Source of the DNA: Hyphochytrium catenoides
Taxonomy: Eukaryota > Protista > Hyphochytriomycota
DNA length: 33,788 nucleotides
Direction of reading: 5' to 3'
Assembly (NCBI GenBank): GCA_900088475.1
Contig: FLMG01003049.1
Span: 1 to 33,788 of the forward strand
Below the pieces are notes generated by a model. That model was not told where the DNA came from. It saw only the letters and a list, made by a program, of their open reading frames with translations, and ran no database searches. The position numbers were made by a program, and so were the translations under genes. This document shows, in pieces, positions 711 to 13,062 of this stretch (within the stretch, counting starts at the first letter, position 1; each line of letters begins with the position of its first letter).

Positions 711-1666
711 CTAGGTTCCATCTGGGAGGGGTGTTAACTGCCCTTCTTGCTTGCCTTGCCCATATCTCTCCACGCTCCTACGCAGCTCTGTAATGACCTT
801 GTTGGGGTCCTTGGCCTTGTAAACCGAGCTGCCGGCAACGATCATGTTAGCACCAGCGCGAGCCGCTTCATCAATAGTACTGGGACCCAGTCCTCCATCA
901 ACTTCGATGTCCTTAGTTGGATACTTGGCCCTCAAGGTCTTAACCTTGGGCATCATGTCCGCCATAAATTTCTGTCCTCCAAACCCTGGTTCCACTGTCA
1001 TCACTAGGAGCATGTCCACCATCTCTGCACATGGGTAGAGCGCTTCCACCGGTGTGCCGGGCTTGATAGCCATACCAACCTTCATGCCTATCGAGAGGAA
1101 AGAGGGATCCTCGTGAGGAGAGAGCTATTCAAATAGAAGAGCAATGACGACAATCACGCTGAAGGAACAACAAGCGCTTGTGCTCGGCGTGAGGGCCCGT
1201 GGGTAACCAGACATAGCTAGAATCCGGAGTGTAAGATCAGGGGAATGCAACTCAAGGCAGTTACCCGACAAACATTCATAGCGCAAAAAGGTAGAGAGGC
1301 TTTCCCCGCCGTTCCGTAGCTGCGCACACTACCTGCTTCTCGGATCATCTTGATCAATCCCTCAGGGTCCTCCGTGGATTCCAAGTGGAAGGTAAACTGG
1401 TCGGCGCCTGCTTCCTTCATTGGCCCCACCCACTGCTCAGGCTTGCTGACCATCATATGGACGTCAAAGAAGGCTGAGGAGTGCTTCCTTAAGCTCTGAA
1501 TGACTGGCGGACCCCAGGATATGTTTGGAACAAAGTGTCCGTCCATCACGTCCACGTGAAGATAATCTGCACCGGCATCCATAACTTTCTGGGCTTCAGA
1601 TGCAAGGTTGGCCAAATCACAAGCCAGAAGAGATGGACCAATCTTACAAGGACAGCAGTGGACCAT
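711..1666 (-). CDS. RPE: Ribulose-phosphate 3-epimerase (cytosolic type), 2 exons: 1666-1333, 1087-711
   Basis: Motifs [66 protein letters not shown]. The GT-AG intron 1332-1088 joins EAG-MKVG in frame. The ORF-track upstream extension (1978-1667) is not homologous. Confidence 0.95.
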
Positions 1667-2156
1667 CGTGACAAAGATCGATAGTGACCTTAGCGATGCA
1701 GAGCCACAAGGATGGAGGTAAGGAGAGCTCAGGAACGCTCTACTTCTACTTAATGGCGACTGACCTCGAAGGGCCTGAGTGGACACACCACGTTTAGAAA
1801 GAAGTATAGAGGAAAGGGAACTGAAGAAGATGGGCAGAGTTCCGTCTCTTTGTTGACAGACCGTGGATTTGTAGGGGTACGAAAAGGAGAAAGACGATAA
1901 GATCACGGGGGGGCCTAAGCAGTGACTCCGTCTGGCGCTCTTCACAGCGAGAGAGAGTCTGAAGGAGAGCAGTGGCATGCCGAAGCGATCTTAAGCTATT
2001 CCCTAGCAGGCTGAGTGGACCAGTGAGTGACCTTGCTTCTCATCCCTTCTGAGTGACAGACAGGCTGGTGATCATGAAGACGTAGACAGGCAGTCAAAAC
2101 AGTGCCAGGGTAGCCGCTAACCGCAAGTGAGAACCCTACCTTTCACCGTTCTGATT

Positions 2157-6000: not shown

Positions 6001-7544
6001 ATAGATGCCTTCGCCTGCTGCCTCATGACCTCAATGGTGGAGGTTTCTTCGTTGCTGTCCTGGAGAAAGTGGGGAGCTTCAGACCAGGGGCTCGCAGTGT
6101 ACCTCACGCAATAAGGCCACAGCCTTTGCCGCCAAAGGACGGGAGAAGCAAGACTGACGGGATCTCAGAGCAGACTGGAGGGAAGGGGGTGGGGAGGGTC
6201 AAATCTTCGTCAAGACCTTTCGTCCCTATCAGCGAAGATGTCTGGGTCAAAATAAGTTCCACATATGGACTCTCTGCAACTTCTAAGATGAAGGTAAGGT
6301 CCATCGTCTCATATAAAGTTAGTCCTACCGCTATTTAGCAAGTCGAGAGGCATATTGTAAGTGGAGAGAAAGAAGACAATCCTCACATTTATGAATGCAG
6401 GGTCGTCTCTTCACGAGGTCTAAGAGTAGCATCTACTTTGTTCCTAAACATGTTGAAGAGAGGGTCATCGGTTTTGAGGAGCTCCAGGTAAGGTTAACAG
6501 TCCCACTGGAGCTTTCTGCTGCTCCGTTTCTCAAGGGAGCTAATGAAGGAGCTTTGAATGCTGTTGTGAAGAGACAACAGGAGTGTGTAGTTTCTAAGCC
6601 CAGCAGAGAGAATGTAAGGGAGATATGAATGATGACGAAGAGCATGAAGGGAAAGGATAGAACTTATTATGGCTTACTGATAGCAAAACTTCTACTTCCT
6701 GTCAGAACATTGAGCACATCGGAGTCAAGATGTTTGAGCATGTCAACAGCGGCTTCGTAGCAGAGTTTGCTTACCGTCCTACCCTGGTAGGAGAAACCCC
6801 ATTTTACTTTAGAAGAGATAAACATACCAAACGGAACCCTACGAAAATCGTTGTTGGTGCAAGAGAGACACTGCCGGAGAGATCGAGCAAGAAAGTGTCC
6901 TATCAGACTCTGAGTAACCGTTTGACTCTCAAATAGGAATCCCTGCCCCTTCTGGTGGGAATAGCAACAAAACGAGTGGTACACCTTCCGCTAGCTCTCC
7001 TACGGGACCTTTTGGAACTTTTTCAACAGGGGAAGCTGCTAGGCCATGACCGTCTCCCTCCCCCCCTTCTGGAAACCCTAGTGGATCTAACGGATGGACC
7101 CGTTATAATATCCCCCAGCCCAGAGGATGCGGACTGGCGAACGCTGCATAAACAGCTTCCAAGGTGAGAAAGGAAGGATCCTCACTCAGCATAGGCTGAT
7201 CTGAATAGGAGGAATAGGCCAAAGGGAAGAGCTGAGAATGAAAGGTCAGCACCACTCTTCTGGGCAGAAAGCAAAGGGAAGCACTTCAAAAAGGGATACA
7301 TAAAGCCCCAGTAGATAGAAAATACTCATAGGAGCATGAGCAGCGGGGTGTCTGAGGCTGTGGAAAGGTATTGACAAGCTCAATTCTTTACAACTTCTCT
7401 TTGCCTGTTGCACACAGACTGCAAAGAGGCGACGTGTCCTTTACCGCTTATAAGGGAACTTCCATCCTTTTGGCACTAATGAAGTCAGAAGCTATCAGCA
7501 GATACAAGGCGAGGCTGGAAGCCCTAACAGAGCTTAAGGCCTAG
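2715..7544 (+). CDS. NSUN2: tRNA (cytosine-5)-methyltransferase NSUN2/Trm4 family. About 15 exons: 2715-2807, 3186-3292, 3431-3517, 3832-3902, 4140-4428, 4574-4650, 4840-5021, 5154-5210, 5379-5466, 5623-5797, 5957-6293, 6401-6487, 6706-6787, 6937-7163, 7418-7544
   Basis: Ordered family motifs: ISYYQ, IVPGEEW, PLPLTFRV, LEWYP, FLVQETDNGQISRQEQVSMIPPLFL, DLCAAPGSKSTQ (SAM motif I), VVCNDAD, RVLCDVPCSGDGT (motif IV PC), GGRMVYSTCTFNPIENEAV (motif VI TC), RCLRLLPHDLNGGGFFVAVLEK. GT-AG junctions keep the frame. The start codon and some terminal exon limits are less certain. Confidence 0.9.
2820..3130 (+). repeat. CT-rich low-complexity tract with a (CT)n run and assembly gap (N 3050-3066) in NSUN2 intron 1
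   Basis: Visible pyrimidine-rich tract. A pure (CT)n run leads into the 17-N gap. Confidence 0.9.
3619..3696 (+). repeat. Imperfect 39-bp tandem duplication in an NSUN2 intron
   Basis: atgatagagtgagaacctgagagtgagagtgggagagat followed by atgataaaataagaacctgagagtgagagcaggagcgaa. Confidence 0.8.
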
Positions 7545-7723
7545 AGGCTGTTGGGATCTATGCAATGGTTCAATATTCCAGTTCTGACGTTCTTTAGTTG
7601 GCTGCGGCGCTCCAGTGGGCACTGAAGGACGATTCTGAAGTGCTGAAGAGCCGCCCGTCCAGCCCTCTCGTTCTACCTCTCATACCACCATTTCACCAAC
7701 ATACGTTCTGGAGCGCCCCACCC

Positions 7724-10114
7724 TCATTGCTTGACAAGATCATCTTTAGCAATTCTACCTTTACGCGGGGGAAAGAGAGAAGGCGTGGATCCCACAACGT
7801 GAAGCTGGATGGTGTTCGTGGCTCTCACCGTCCCCAGAGGCCGACCAGCCACCACCAATATCCTATCTCCTGGGTGGGCGAGCGCATTCGATATCAACAC
7901 TTTATCTAAGAAGTCCGTCAGGTCCCGGAGGGAGCCATTGCCCGGTATGCTGGCATGAACAGGGGTTACGGCGTTAAACAACGCCATCTGCTGCACGCTC
8001 CTCTCCTCCTCAGAGAAGGCAATGATCGGCACGTCGAAGGCATTCTGGCTGAGGTATCTTGCAGTGTTCCCATGCTGGGACCAGCATACTACATACTTTA
8101 CCTGAGCATCTCTGGCAGTGTGCCATGCCCCATGAGCCATTGCAGCCGTCATCAAGTGTCCAGCTGAGAAACGCGTCGGCGGTGCGGTCGTCTTGATCAT
8201 GGACATCAGCCGCTTCTCGGCGGCGGCGACAATCTTTGTCATCGTCTCTACAACAAGAGTCGGATGTCGCCCGGTAGCTGTCTCTGCAGAGAGCATGACC
8301 GCGTCTGCGCCATCGAAAATAGCGTTGGCTACGTCACTTGCCTCTGCTCGTGTGGGTGTGTTGTTCTGGATCATGGTCTCTAACATTTGAGTAGCAATAA
8401 TGCATGGTTTTCCGAAGAGAGAACAGCGCTCCACAATTTGCTTCTGCGTGATGGGGACAGACTCAATATCCATCTCCACACCCAGATCGCCTCTTGCGAC
8501 CATAACCGCATCGCTTGCCTCAACTATGGAGTCAAGATGGGCTAAAGCCTGAGGTTTCTCTATCTTAGAGATAATGCCAATCATGGGATTGTCACTTTGT
8601 ATGATCTGCACCTAAAGGGAGAGCAAGCGTACAATTAGGGGCCTGCCAAATAGTGAGAATAGCGTTTGAAAAGGGGTGCAAGTCACGAAATCAAAGATCA
8701 TAAAATGAGTAACAGAGAAGAAGTGCATCTAAACGATGCAGGCAGCACATAAGGCCTAACGTTGCACGGCCAGCGTTGCGTCGCTTGCAAATGAGGATTG
8801 GTAAAGGTTTCTCCTCACCTGACCGTGCTTCTTAGCCTCTAAGTACTTCAGCCTTGAACGCAAATTGTAGACCTCGTCTGCCTTTCGTACAAAGGAAAGA
8901 GCGAGATAGTCTAGTCCATGTTCGACGGCCCAAGCCACGCATTCCCAGTCTCTTTCTGTGATGGCAGGTGCCGAAATGTTGCTTTCAGGTAGGTTGATAC
9001 CTTTGCCACTGGTTACCTTTCCCCCTTCCAAGACTCTGCATCGTAGCTCTCCAGCGATAGCATCCGTGGAGACAGCGACCATGCGGATGGCGCCATCATT
9101 GATCAAGACCTATCAGTGGAGTGAGTCGTTCTCGCAGAGGAGGAGGGAAAATGTAAAGGGAACGTAATAGACTAGTAGGTTTTGGGATGGCTTGGCTCGC
9201 CTGCATCGAAGGAAAGTGCGATATGTTGTCACTGGGGGTATTAGAGGCAGGAAGCCTTAGTCAAGCCTTAGTCGTGCCACTGACGAGGAAAAGCGGAAGC
9301 AGTTCCCTCACAAAGAGGTAATACCAGAAAAGATTTTCAAGGTGAGGATGACCAGTCACATGTGACTTTATATGCGCACCTTGTGCCCTACGCTGACTTC
9401 ATGGACAAGGTCTGGATAGGTAAGAGATAAAACGGCTTCATCCTGCCCCTTGCTATTCTTCCTAAGAAGTGCTTCGCCAGCAGTGCTCGAGAGAACTACC
9501 TCATCACCGGTCTGCAGGGCTAGAGTACCGCCTCCGGAAGGAGATTTCTCGCCAATGCCAGCCGGGACGGTGCCAACTCTAATCTTGGGCCCTTGCAGGT
9601 CTCCAGCAACTGCGACAGCGATGCCAAGATCCTTTGAAACGCGGCGCACAGTCTACAAGGATGGAAAATATTGTAGGAGAAACAAGGCTTAATATCTATG
9701 GAGCATAATTGAGGAGTGGCTCGGGTAGAAATGTTGAGTGACGGCTGAGAGTTACTAAAGGCAGAGAAGATTATGAGTGATGTTTCTTCTCAGCGTTACC
9801 TCCAATCTCTTCAGATGACCGTCAAAGTTCCCGTGTGAGAAGTTCAATCTGAACACTCGTGTCCCCTTCAGAATTAGACTACGTATCGCATCATCGGACT
9901 CACTGGCCGGGCCAAGGGTGGCTATAATCTTGGTGTAGGTGACGGGGTTAATTATACCCTTAGGCAGACCGGAAGTCGCTGAACCTGCGGTGATTCCAGC
10001 TGAAGACAGATATCGCAAGGGCGACAAGCGTTTGGCAGCGTTCAAACGCTTACCGACGTCATGTGCACGGACGAAAGAAGAGGCTCGAAGCAGTGAAGAG
10101 TATGGACGCACCAT
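7724..10114 (-). CDS. PK: Pyruvate kinase, bacterial-like K+-independent type with N-terminal targeting extension. 4 exons: 10114-9800, 9652-9380, 9109-8819, 8611-7724
   Basis: TKIIATLGPAS, FRLNFSHG, GDLQGPKIRVG, INDGAI, KGINLP, ALSFVR, SKIEKPQA, VMVARGDLGVE, ATQMLETMI..PTRAEASDVANAIFDGADAVMLSAETA. All three introns are GT-AG, phase 0. Confidence 0.95.
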
Positions 10115-10813
10115 TTGGATGATGGTGGTCTCCAACGCGACCACGCTGTTCTTCTAGTCTACACCAGCAAAACTGCTGGGACTTAAAGAAGACGAGCCTG
10201 CACTAGACACAGGGCAAAGCCAGTCTCCAGCTTCCAGTTGACAGAGATCACACCGGAGCCACACCGGACCTAAGAGACCATCACGCAGTGAAGACTTTGG
10301 TCTCAAGAAAGGGTTACGACGCCGTGAAGTCCATGATTGTCTGTGGAGGAGTGAGAGAGAAAGATCAAGATTTGTCGCTTCATCCTAGCCTACATCCAGC
10401 CATCCCCCAGGAGCCTGGGTAGTGAGGACATTTTGTTGAATGTTGGAGTTGGCCAACTTTGAGATCTCCCCCCGGACTAGATAACCACCCCCCAGGAGCG
10501 GCGAAGGGGAATGATGTCACGATCAGAAGCATGATGGATGTCGGTTCCCTCGAGCTCCTTGAGCGGTCTCAAGGGAAGAAGGCCACGGATACGGATAGTC
10601 CTCGAGAGGCCTGGACGCCCTCCCGGCTGGCAACTCTTCTTTGTGGAGGCGCGGTCACAATGATTTCTGGAGAGGGCGGAAGTTGAATGTTGCTGTGCGG
10701 ATGGACCCAAGCCCCGCTTTGTTATTGAGGTCATTGCAAAAGATCTTACACTAGTTGCGTCTTAACCTGGCCGCTCTTATACTTGTGAGGGACATCCTTT
10801 GTCAAGTCTTTCG

Positions 10814-13062
10814 ATGCCAGAGCTTCCCGAGGTTGAGCGGGCCAGAAGGCTCCTAGCTCGCACTTGTGAGGGCAAAGTAATTGACAAAGTCACGGCCATT
10901 GAGCAGGGCGGGGCAGCACGAGATGGCCAATTCGATGACATGTACGAATCTTAACCTGCTTTTGGCCGTTCATTCTAGCCTTGGACCCCGGGCCCCATAC
11001 TCTCCCTCCTTTGAATGCTACCTTGCTCCGATCTCATCATATCCACTTGTTAGAATTTTTGAAGGCCTCACTCCGACCCTTCTGGAGAGCTCATTGAGGG
11101 GCAGAAAGATTTTGAAAGCTCAGCGTAAAGGGAAGCACCTGTGGCTGGACCTGGAGGGCGATGGCTTTCATCCTATTTTCCACTTCGGGATGAGCGGAAA
11201 TTTCGTAGTGAGAAACGAGGACTCACCTGGCTATCGAAGGAAGGTTGGACTGGGGAAAGAAGGAGAATGGCCTCCTCGGTTTTGCAAGCTTGAGCTTGTT
11301 CTGGAGGTCGGTAGGCTACCAGTCCTAGGTCCGCCTCCATCTCTCTCTGCGTCGTCTCCATCACCTTCTGCAGTTCTTCTTTCCCTATTGCCGCAAGTGG
11401 AACGGATGGTCGTTCACTTCCTTCTGCTCCTGCTTGTCTTCCCATGTACTACATTTCTTCCGAACATCCGAGCTTCGGTCTTAGGTGAAGTAGCTTTAGC
11501 ATTAGAATTTATATCATCTCACGGACCTCATTGCATATACTTCTTAGGATGACACAGCGGTTGCATTCACCTGTCCCCGGCGCATTGGGCGGGTCCGGCT
11601 AGTGAAAGACGTTCTTGGTAGCCCACCGATCTCTGAGCTTGTAAGTTGGGGTCTAGCTCCCAATCCTCTCTACTGCCTATCCTTTTGTCCTCTTATGAGC
11701 TACCCTTTGTACCCATACTCAAGCTATGCTGTCCCTTTGCTGAACTCAAGTGTTAGGCTACTTCTTTAAGCCTCTACTCCTAAAGGTTACCGTTTCGTTC
11801 TCCCTTGCCCAGGGCTTTGACCCTTTGAACAGCATGCCTGCGGTGGAGGACTTTGTACTCAGGCTTCAGAAGAACAAGTGCGCAGTCAAGGCCCTGCTGC
11901 TTGACCAAGGCTTCTCAGCCGGCGTTGGTAATTGGATTGCGGATGAGGTCTGCTTTCAAGCCAAGCTTCATCCTGCAAGGGTAGCATCAGCCCTGTCAGA
12001 CGAAGAGGGACAAGAGGTAAAGTCTCGCTATGAGTTGCTCTGATCGCCAAGTTGCAAATAGTGCCAGATATCGGTACCTGCTCTTCCAGCAATTGCGTGC
12101 TTCCTAGTAGATACTCGCAGTTTCATTCTGACCCCTTGCTGTTTGAGGACGCACCTGAGCAAGTTACTGAGGTTCATTAGTGCGAATTTACTCTACGTTT
12201 GCTGAAGACTTCTACTCTTGCTCTAACGTGGTATCTGTGTTGCTAGATTCAATAACCACAACGTACAACCTTCTCTCGCTCTCCCTTGTGGTATCTGCAG
12301 CTGTGGCGGACGTTATCAAGAGTTATAGAGTTCGCCTGCGACGTGAACGCCGATCATACAAAATTTCCCCCTGATTGGCTATTTCACTATCGCTGGACGA
12401 AAGGATCAAAGGACGCCGTGTATGCACCAAGCAAAGAAAAGCTCCAGTTTCTGACTGTTGGAGGTCGAACTACGGCCATAGTGCCAAGTATACAAAGGAA
12501 CATAGGGATAAAAAAGAAGAAGAAGAGCAAAGAGACTGCAAAAACTGAGCGAAGGAAGAAAAAAACCGGCCTGGATGCAGTTGGAGCATCTACTAAGGCG
12601 AAACGGCTCCAAGGCCCAGTTAAGGGGCGACGGGTAAAGGGCATTGGCAGAGCTTCTGAGCCGCTTGACACAGCGGCTGAAATTACCCCTAAGAAGCGCA
12701 AAGTTGCCAAAGGTCGCTCAGTTGAGGTAACACCGCCTTCAAGGAAACGAAGGCGTACTGCCGGAGTGCAAGATGTGGCACTCCTGGCCGTTACTACTAG
12801 TGCACCAACACATCCATCTACAGAGGACGATATCAAGCAGGAAGCTCCATTGGCAATGGCAGCTACGACGACGAAGCAGGCTCCAAACAAAAGAGAGTCA
12901 AGAGCGGCCTCCAAGACTCCAGCACTCAAAGCGCAGGCTCAGGAGCAGCAAGAGAAAACGACGAAGCCAAGGAGTCAGGCAGTCCAGGGTCAACAAAGAA
13001 TAGCCCCACGCCGTAGTCTCCGCCTTAGCCACCAAGGGATGTCCTTAGCCTCGAAAGGTTAA
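10814..13062 (+). CDS. FPG: Formamidopyrimidine-DNA glycosylase (Fpg/MutM family, plant/fungal zincless-finger type). 5 exons: 10814-10941, 11054-11306, 11548-11640, 11813-12016, 12301-13062
   Basis: N-terminal catalytic MPELPEVE at 10814 (missed by the ORF track), RKGKHLW, HFGMSG, WPPRFCK, H2TH motif VKALLLDQGFSAGVGNWIADEVCFQAKLHP, FPPDWLFHYRW and zincless finger TVGGRTTA. Ends in a long Lys/Arg-rich tail. Confidence 0.93.

Follow-up and report, generated by a model that had tools for sequence, protein, structure and literature searches.

A pyruvate kinase gene of Phycisphaerae ancestry in Hyphochytrium catenoides is shared with saprolegnian water moulds and carries a putative mitochondrial presequence

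We describe a gene for pyruvate kinase (PK) in the hyphochytrid Hyphochytrium catenoides, which the NCBI taxonomy places in the Stramenopiles (Hyphochytriomycetes). The gene lies at 7724..10114 on the minus strand of contig FLMG01003049.1 (assembly GCA_900088475.1); the whole 33,788-nucleotide stretch analyzed (positions 1 to 33,788) is referred to below as the window. The locus is a real, intact, intron-containing nuclear gene, and its product has its ancestry in the bacterial class Phycisphaerae (Planctomycetota). Taken as a whole, we consider it probable that the gene encodes an active PK of the Lys117 type, which passed from Phycisphaerae to an ancestor of hyphochytrids and oomycetes, has descended vertically since then, and is putatively mitochondrial.

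The gene model was rebuilt by reading the minus strand of positions 7650–10250. The coding region comprises 588 codons in four exons, from an ATG at 10114–10112 to a TGA at 7726–7724, with the splice sites read off the sequence. Exon 1 (9800..10114; residues 1–105, 105 codons) encodes an N-terminal extension and the start of the PK barrel (TKIIATLGP...RLNFSHG), and is followed by exon 2 (9380..9652; residues 106–196, 91 codons) and exon 3 (8819..9109; residues 197–293, 97 codons). Exon 4 (7724..8611; residues 294–588 plus the TGA, 295 codons) encodes the region of the catalytic residues Lys309, Glu311, Asp335 and Thr367 and the C-terminal α/β domain. A preliminary description of this DNA had listed three phase-0 spliceosomal introns, and all three were recovered: intron 1 (9653..9799, 147 nt), intron 2 (9110..9379, 270 nt) and intron 3 (8612..8818, 207 nt), all on the minus strand and all GT..AG. 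Each breaks the frame with stop codons, and their guanine + cytosine (GC) content is 0.41–0.48. Translated in order, the exons cover consecutive parts of the Pfam PK barrel (profile positions 3–47, 50–124, 126–211 and 210–326 of 328 for exons 1–4), and the PK_C domain is complete in exon 4 (2–114 of 114), so that the two domains are contiguous over the exons. The serial match to the barrel shows that the splice model is right to within 1–2 residues. The peptide segments quoted in the preliminary description are all present in the 588-residue product.

Both domains of the PK family (EC 2.7.1.40; PF00224 and PF02887) are complete in this product, and 75 of the 75 near-invariant PK columns (conserved at ≥97% among 90 homologues) are intact. 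When checked against the rabbit reference set (Arg72/Asn74/Ser76, Asp112, Arg119, Lys269, Glu271, Asp295, Thr327, Ser361 and Glu363), the catalytic, Mg and substrate ligands were found to be conserved as R89, N91, S93, D123, R130, K309, E311, D335, T367, S401 and E403. The best match in the PDB by sequence was 5wrp (185 bits), which we take to be the PK of Mycobacterium tuberculosis, the database label reading just “Pyruvate kinase”; mammalian PKM scored 143 bits. A feature search of the ESM Atlas ranked plant plastid PK clusters first, a resemblance of features that is contradicted by the sequence searches and trees described below.

The monovalent-cation site reads DLQGPKIRV (residues 123–131; 9575..9601, minus strand), corresponding to Leu113, Gln114, Lys117 and Val120 in rabbit muscle numbering (PMC8835810). 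Leu113, Gln114 and Lys117, with Leu, Ile or Val at position 120, are the mark of K+-independent PKs (PMC8835810, PMC4284704). Glu117 with Thr113, Lys114 and Thr120 is found in K+-dependent PKs, and eukaryotic PKs are said to have Glu117 (PMC8835810, PMC4284704, PMC4374775). Among the homologue matches with a recognizable site motif, position 117 was Lys in nearly all cases or else Arg, and Glu in none. The four residues bear out the earlier proposal of a bacterial-type PK with a K+-independent signature, and by that signature the product is assigned to the bacterial Lys117 type and predicted to be independent of K+.

A search of 5.8 billion proteins with exon 4 returned PKs labelled Phycisphaerales, Phycisphaeraceae, Phycisphaera and Planctomycetota at 54–60% identity, and a single named eukaryote, Aphanomyces invadans (67% over the portion covered). 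The A. invadans protein, used as a query in turn, found orthologues in Aphanomyces astaci, A. euteiches, Achlya hypogyna, Thraustotheca clavata and Saprolegnia parasitica, followed by more than 110 Phycisphaerae-type proteins at 50–58% identity. These 120 best relatives, from sources that include UniRef, nr and EukProt, contained no eukaryotes beyond the Saprolegniales, nor the canonical stramenopile mitochondrial PK (PITG_07405 type). A HMMER pass over 1.84 billion cluster representatives placed the Aphanomyces cluster at the top and planctomycete clusters next, and the best 150 representatives were nearly all bacterial-looking, with almost no canonical stramenopile PKs. Twenty of the cluster matches were put to names, and proved to be metagenome-assembled genomes (MAGs), metagenome proteins and one EukProt transcript (P0135). 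A contig scan of genomes with very general peptide patterns gave mostly distant phyla among the matches listed, and these were used as named outgroups. The gene for P0273, the closest homologue from bacteria, lies among other, tightly packed bacterial genes.

The transcript P0135 (1051 aa) was considered as a lead to canonical stramenopile PKs, but turned out to represent an unrelated algal family. It consists of two PK barrels fused to adenylate kinase and, together with P0401–P0470, makes up a separate eukaryotic family of Lys117-type PKs that lacks the C-terminal domain and has members in a dinoflagellate (Durusdinium), a dictyochophyte, a chlorarachniophyte (Lotharella) and pavlovophytes. 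Among named bacteria, Flavobacteria come closest to it (about 41% identity), and it forms a 100% clade of its own away from the clade of the window protein.

Trees were built with FastTree from 383 sequences and then with IQ-TREE (LG+C20+F+G4, posterior mean site frequency model) from 92 rows and 516 columns, and the two analyses were concordant on placement. The window protein forms a 100/100 clade with P0002, a 468-residue open reading frame (ORF) from a metagenome, and five Saprolegniales proteins. This eukaryotic clade is nested within a bacterial one in the maximum-likelihood tree, at four starred nodes within Phycisphaerae: successive clades of 40 (100/99), 46 (100/93), 48 (100/99) and 70 rows (100/99). 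The named members of these clades are Phycisphaerales, Phycisphaerae, Tepidisphaera (a member of class Phycisphaerae by its taxonomy) and Phycisphaeraceae, together with two MAGs labelled only as Planctomycetota. Isosphaeraceae and other Planctomycetota fall outside them, and other phyla still further out. The N-terminal and C-terminal halves, treed apart, were placed alike, indicating that the gene is not a mosaic.

An insertion in the lid (B) domain marks the same group without recourse to a tree. Directly after the cation-site motif, the window protein has 11 additional residues, GIGEKSPSGGG (residues 137–147; 9527..9559, minus strand), that follow the pattern G-[IV]-G-x-x-S-x-S-G-G-G. This insertion is found throughout the 40-row subclade, in its 33 bacteria as well as in the seven eukaryotic rows. 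The remaining 52 rows lack it, although two have unrelated insertions at the same spot. The tree, the insertion and the bacterial context of the closest homologue together give the direction of transfer, from bacterium to eukaryote, with the class Phycisphaerae as donor. The likeness to Phycisphaerales PKs that the preliminary description had proposed was thus correct, the nearest bacterial relatives being Phycisphaerae/Phycisphaerales by searches, tree and insertion alike.

We considered the possibility that the gene belongs to a widespread, vertically inherited clade of stramenopile mitochondrial PKs, and that its bacterial look reflects ancient shared ancestry. PKs with presequences are general in stramenopiles (PMC5715807, PMC6198282), and the tree was built from other sequences. 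However, no PK from diatoms, brown algae, Phytophthora or Blastocystis ranked above the more than 110 Phycisphaerae proteins, the best cluster representatives were almost all bacterial-looking, and the subclade-specific insertion links the gene to a terminal group of Phycisphaerae. The search rankings and the insertion would set the gene apart from the canonical mitochondrial clade, and we regard its membership in that clade as very unlikely.

In the preliminary description, the transfer had been proposed as an independent one, which would make it peculiar to this genome. The bacterial affinity is real, and the three introns of the window gene are absent from the Saprolegniales genes. That reading was nevertheless overturned by the orthologous PKs in public Saprolegniales proteomes: the eukaryotic proteins form a single 100/100 clade with a stem of 0.52, and they have in common both the insertion in the lid domain and an N-terminal extension with an R-3 motif. 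We give a separate capture in the hyphochytrid lineage very little credence. Within the clade, the branching order is window, (P0002, (Aphanomyces, (Thraustotheca, (Saprolegnia, Achlya)))), with all nodes starred. Hyphochytrids are the sister group of oomycetes, and this is the order of the species tree. Given that order, the long stem and the host-like base composition, the simplest reading is that the transfer is old and that the gene shared by H. catenoides and Saprolegniales would go back to one event in the common ancestor of hyphochytrids and oomycetes, before the two split.

A single capture from bacteria followed by a move between eukaryotes, for instance in either direction between Saprolegniales and the hyphochytrid, would also give a shared gene, and would fit with the lack of common introns and of any Peronosporales protein in the searches. 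The agreement between the branching order and the accepted organismal order argues against such a move, as does the identity of about 60%, which is consistent with an old split; we consider it improbable. Under the preferred reading of vertical descent, the gene appears to be missing from Peronosporales: no protein from Phytophthora, Pythium or Albugo was present among the 120 best relatives, which is a ranked list and not a genome search. This implies a loss in that branch.

The Saprolegnia gene contains three introns of about 50 nt and the Aphanomyces gene two, Saprolegniales introns being about 45–55 nt overall. The introns were acquired after the transfer, separately in each lineage. In Saprolegnia parasitica (L082:6001-7732) and Aphanomyces euteiches (L083:6001-7652), the first intron precedes TKIMCTVGP by two codons and marks the border between extension and bacterial core; the window gene has no intron at that point. 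Such a position is expected after recruitment of an exon for a targeting peptide, and suggests that the targeting-like extension joined the gene as an exon of its own.

P0002, the sister to the Saprolegniales, comes from an uncultured source, a 2.5-kb contig of assembly GCA_041443025.1. Judged by the tree alone, it would be eukaryotic. Its called ORF starts exactly at the position of intron 1, the start of exon 2 in the window gene, which hints that the two may have intron 1 in common. A scan of metagenome contigs with P0002 yielded no further eukaryote-like relative (best match 55%) and did not recover the P0002 contig itself. A contig from a human-skin metagenome (L156) carries a bacterial PK and was not used.

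The top similarity to bacterial proteins could also be expected from bacterial contamination or a chimeric assembly. This is excluded by the three frame-breaking GT-AG introns, the eukaryote-only neighbours in the 33.8-kb window, the host-like GC content (0.53 for the PK coding sequence vs. 0.50 for the window), the presence of two alleles in DNA sequencing runs, and the intron-bearing orthologues in four oomycete genera. The neighbours include an RSE1/DDB1/CPSF-A-type protein, a eukaryotic aspartyl protease and several more split genes, placing the intron-containing PK gene among eukaryotic genes. GC content is flat along the window (0.47–0.52). Independent DNA runs from the same organism (2011 and 2017) span positions 6500–11500 including the introns; they contain allelic variants, and no intron-less joints were found in them over this interval.

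Several other features of the locus were observed. Just 5' of the PK start, positions 10150–10533 are represented by two alleles in both DNA runs, one of which is separated from the window sequence by 34 substitutions and 25 gap positions, showing that the organism is heterozygous and the 5' flank highly polymorphic. ORFs at 10881–11552 and 12286–13062 (plus strand) match the N- and C-terminal domains of a DNA glycosylase of the Fpg/Nei (bacterial-style) type, and resemble exons of a single split gene that is head to head with the PK gene. An ORF at 1217–1978 (minus strand) has a ribulose-phosphate 3-epimerase domain that starts only at residue 112 and covers the first half of the profile, so that either the N-terminal extension is long or an upstream exon has been misjoined, and more exons lie downstream. 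Short contigs from one farm and one soil metagenome match positions 8245–8502 and 9974–10288 at about 97–99% identity (1–5 differences each), indicating that the same or a very close organism occurs in soils.

The N-terminal extension had been put at about 55 residues before TKIIATLGP; it is present, but we count 60 residues. Among the first 30 are seven Arg or Lys and one Asp (net charge +6), and the maximum helical hydrophobic moment is 0.68, against a mean of 0.33 for the bacterial homologues. Residues 34–38 (R-Y-L↓S-S) fit the R-3 pattern of presequence cleavage, and R-x-[FYLWM]-[SAT] occurs at the corresponding place in all eukaryotic members. Residues 1–36 (10007..10114, minus strand), which end in this motif, are a putative mitochondrial presequence by their positive charge, amphipathic character and common motif. 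Hyphochytrids have no plastid, which makes a mitochondrial presequence the natural reading, and import of the window PK into mitochondria is likely, as judged from these sequence features. In Phytophthora and diatoms, the pay-off half of glycolysis, PK included, has been shown to run in mitochondria (PMC5715807; PMC6198282).

Alternatively, the enzyme might be cytosolic or dual-located, and the extension not a working presequence. The bacterial homologues themselves have an N-terminal lead of 4–54 residues (median 20), and the Achlya presequence that has been tested seems to come from another paralogue. On the other hand, the bacterial leads contain about as many acidic as basic residues (net charge about −0.3), while the extra 36–40 or so residues of the window protein are rich in Arg, Ser, Leu and Ala, include one acidic residue, have a high hydrophobic moment and end in R-x-[FYL]↓[SA], a type of motif present in every eukaryotic member. 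A cytosolic or dual location is, in our view, unlikely, although it retains some weight.

In the history that we favour, a Phycisphaerae bacterium would have donated the gene to the common ancestor of hyphochytrids and oomycetes, after which it would have descended vertically and been retained in H. catenoides, the Saprolegniales and one uncultured relative. Following the transfer, the gene would have adopted the base composition of its host, acquired spliceosomal introns specific to each lineage, and come to encode about 36 further residues at the N-terminus. The precursor would be imported via the mitochondrial presequence pathway and cleaved after Leu36. In the matrix, the enzyme would convert phosphoenolpyruvate and ADP to pyruvate and ATP, the last step of stramenopile mitochondrial pay-off glycolysis, with Lys128 providing the charge that K+ gives in ordinary eukaryotic PKs.

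Several observations weigh against this history. The canonical stramenopile mitochondrial PKs were outside the tree sample. When the 63 bacteria of the Phycisphaerae clade were forced to be monophyletic without the eukaryotes, the log-likelihood dropped by 30.65 and the approximately unbiased test gave p = 0.0465, a marginal rejection of a bacterial group that was defined after the tree was known. The window gene and the Saprolegnia and Aphanomyces genes have no intron position in common. The N-terminal extensions of the eukaryotic members align poorly, which makes it uncertain that the presequence arose only once. The locus was matched in no run on record as RNA. Finally, the presequence of Achlya bisexualis AAU81895, the only one from an oomycete PK to have been tried by experiment, with green fluorescent protein (GFP), is unlike the N-terminal sequence of the clade member from Achlya hypogyna. 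AAU81895 probably belongs to another paralogue and so does not vouch for the window PK family; if it is another paralogue, saprolegnian water moulds may possess two PKs with presequences, each of its own origin.

Literature searches, which did not extend to the supplements of a 2025 phylogeny of central carbon metabolism, found no paper on a planctomycete origin of this PK, on its K+-site type or on the hyphochytrid copy. A published oomycete study presented trees for phosphoglycerate kinase and enolase, with none for PK, and did not include Saprolegniales. The case is a clear and well-supported, though not unique, example of a kind of event already known, the capture of a bacterial gene for the energy metabolism of stramenopiles; neither the mechanism nor the kind of system is new. 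The origin of stramenopile mitochondrial pay-off glycolysis is debated as ancestral, endosymbiotic or horizontal (PMC6198282, PMC5715807). To this debate the gene contributes an unusually clean and datable case of a Phycisphaerae-derived glycolytic enzyme, supported by both tree and indel, and adds a donor that is neither cyanobacterial nor proteobacterial to the mosaic. Its proposed history comprises entry before the hyphochytrid/oomycete split, gain of a presequence-like extension and introns, and loss from one of the major oomycete lineages. With its Lys117, the enzyme also departs from the general rule that PKs of eukaryotes have Glu117 (PMC8835810, PMC4374775). Since animal-pathogenic Saprolegniales have this PK and the searches gave only bacterial relatives, with none from animals or other eukaryotes, it is a reasonable candidate for biochemical study. 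A bolder proposal, which we put forward tentatively and think may well not hold, is that hyphochytrids and saprolegnian water moulds run a planctomycete-derived, K+-independent PK in their mitochondria, beside or in place of the canonical mitochondrial PK. If so, the last step of mitochondrial glycolysis would have been re-equipped with a bacterial enzyme of other ion dependence and probably other allosteric control, which the Phytophthora/Pythium lineage later discarded.

Several known systems are close to the window PK. The PKs of Phycisphaerae (MAGs labelled Phycisphaerales, Phycisphaeraceae and Tepidisphaera) resemble it at 54–63% identity over their full length, are of the same length class (about 510–550 residues), and have the DLQGPKIRV site, the lid insertion and the C-terminal domain. 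In contrast to the window gene, theirs have no introns and are densely packed among other bacterial genes, and the N-terminal leads are short and not basic. The proteins annotated as “pyruvate kinase” in Saprolegniales (S. parasitica, A. hypogyna, T. clavata and A. astaci/euteiches/invadans) are its orthologues by the 100/100 clade, and have the K+-site motif, the lid insertion and a basic N-terminal extension with the R-3 motif. Their identity to the window protein is about 60%, they lack a loop of about 10 residues that the window protein and the bacteria have, and their short introns are at other positions, one of them just before TKIMCTVGP.

The canonical stramenopile mitochondrial PK catalyzes the same reaction, presumably in the same compartment and pathway (PMC5715807, PMC6198282), but was not among the close relatives of the window clade in the search rankings. 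For that enzyme, P. infestans PITG_07405 has been localized by tagging and diatom PK presequences have been tested; the presequence of A. bisexualis AAU81895, which differs from that of the A. hypogyna member of the window clade, drove GFP into mitochondria. With the bacterial K+-independent PKs (Lys117, cluster II), the window protein shares Leu113, Gln114, Lys117 and Val120 (PMC8835810), whereas its gene is set apart from theirs by residence in a eukaryotic nucleus, by its introns and by the targeting-like extension.

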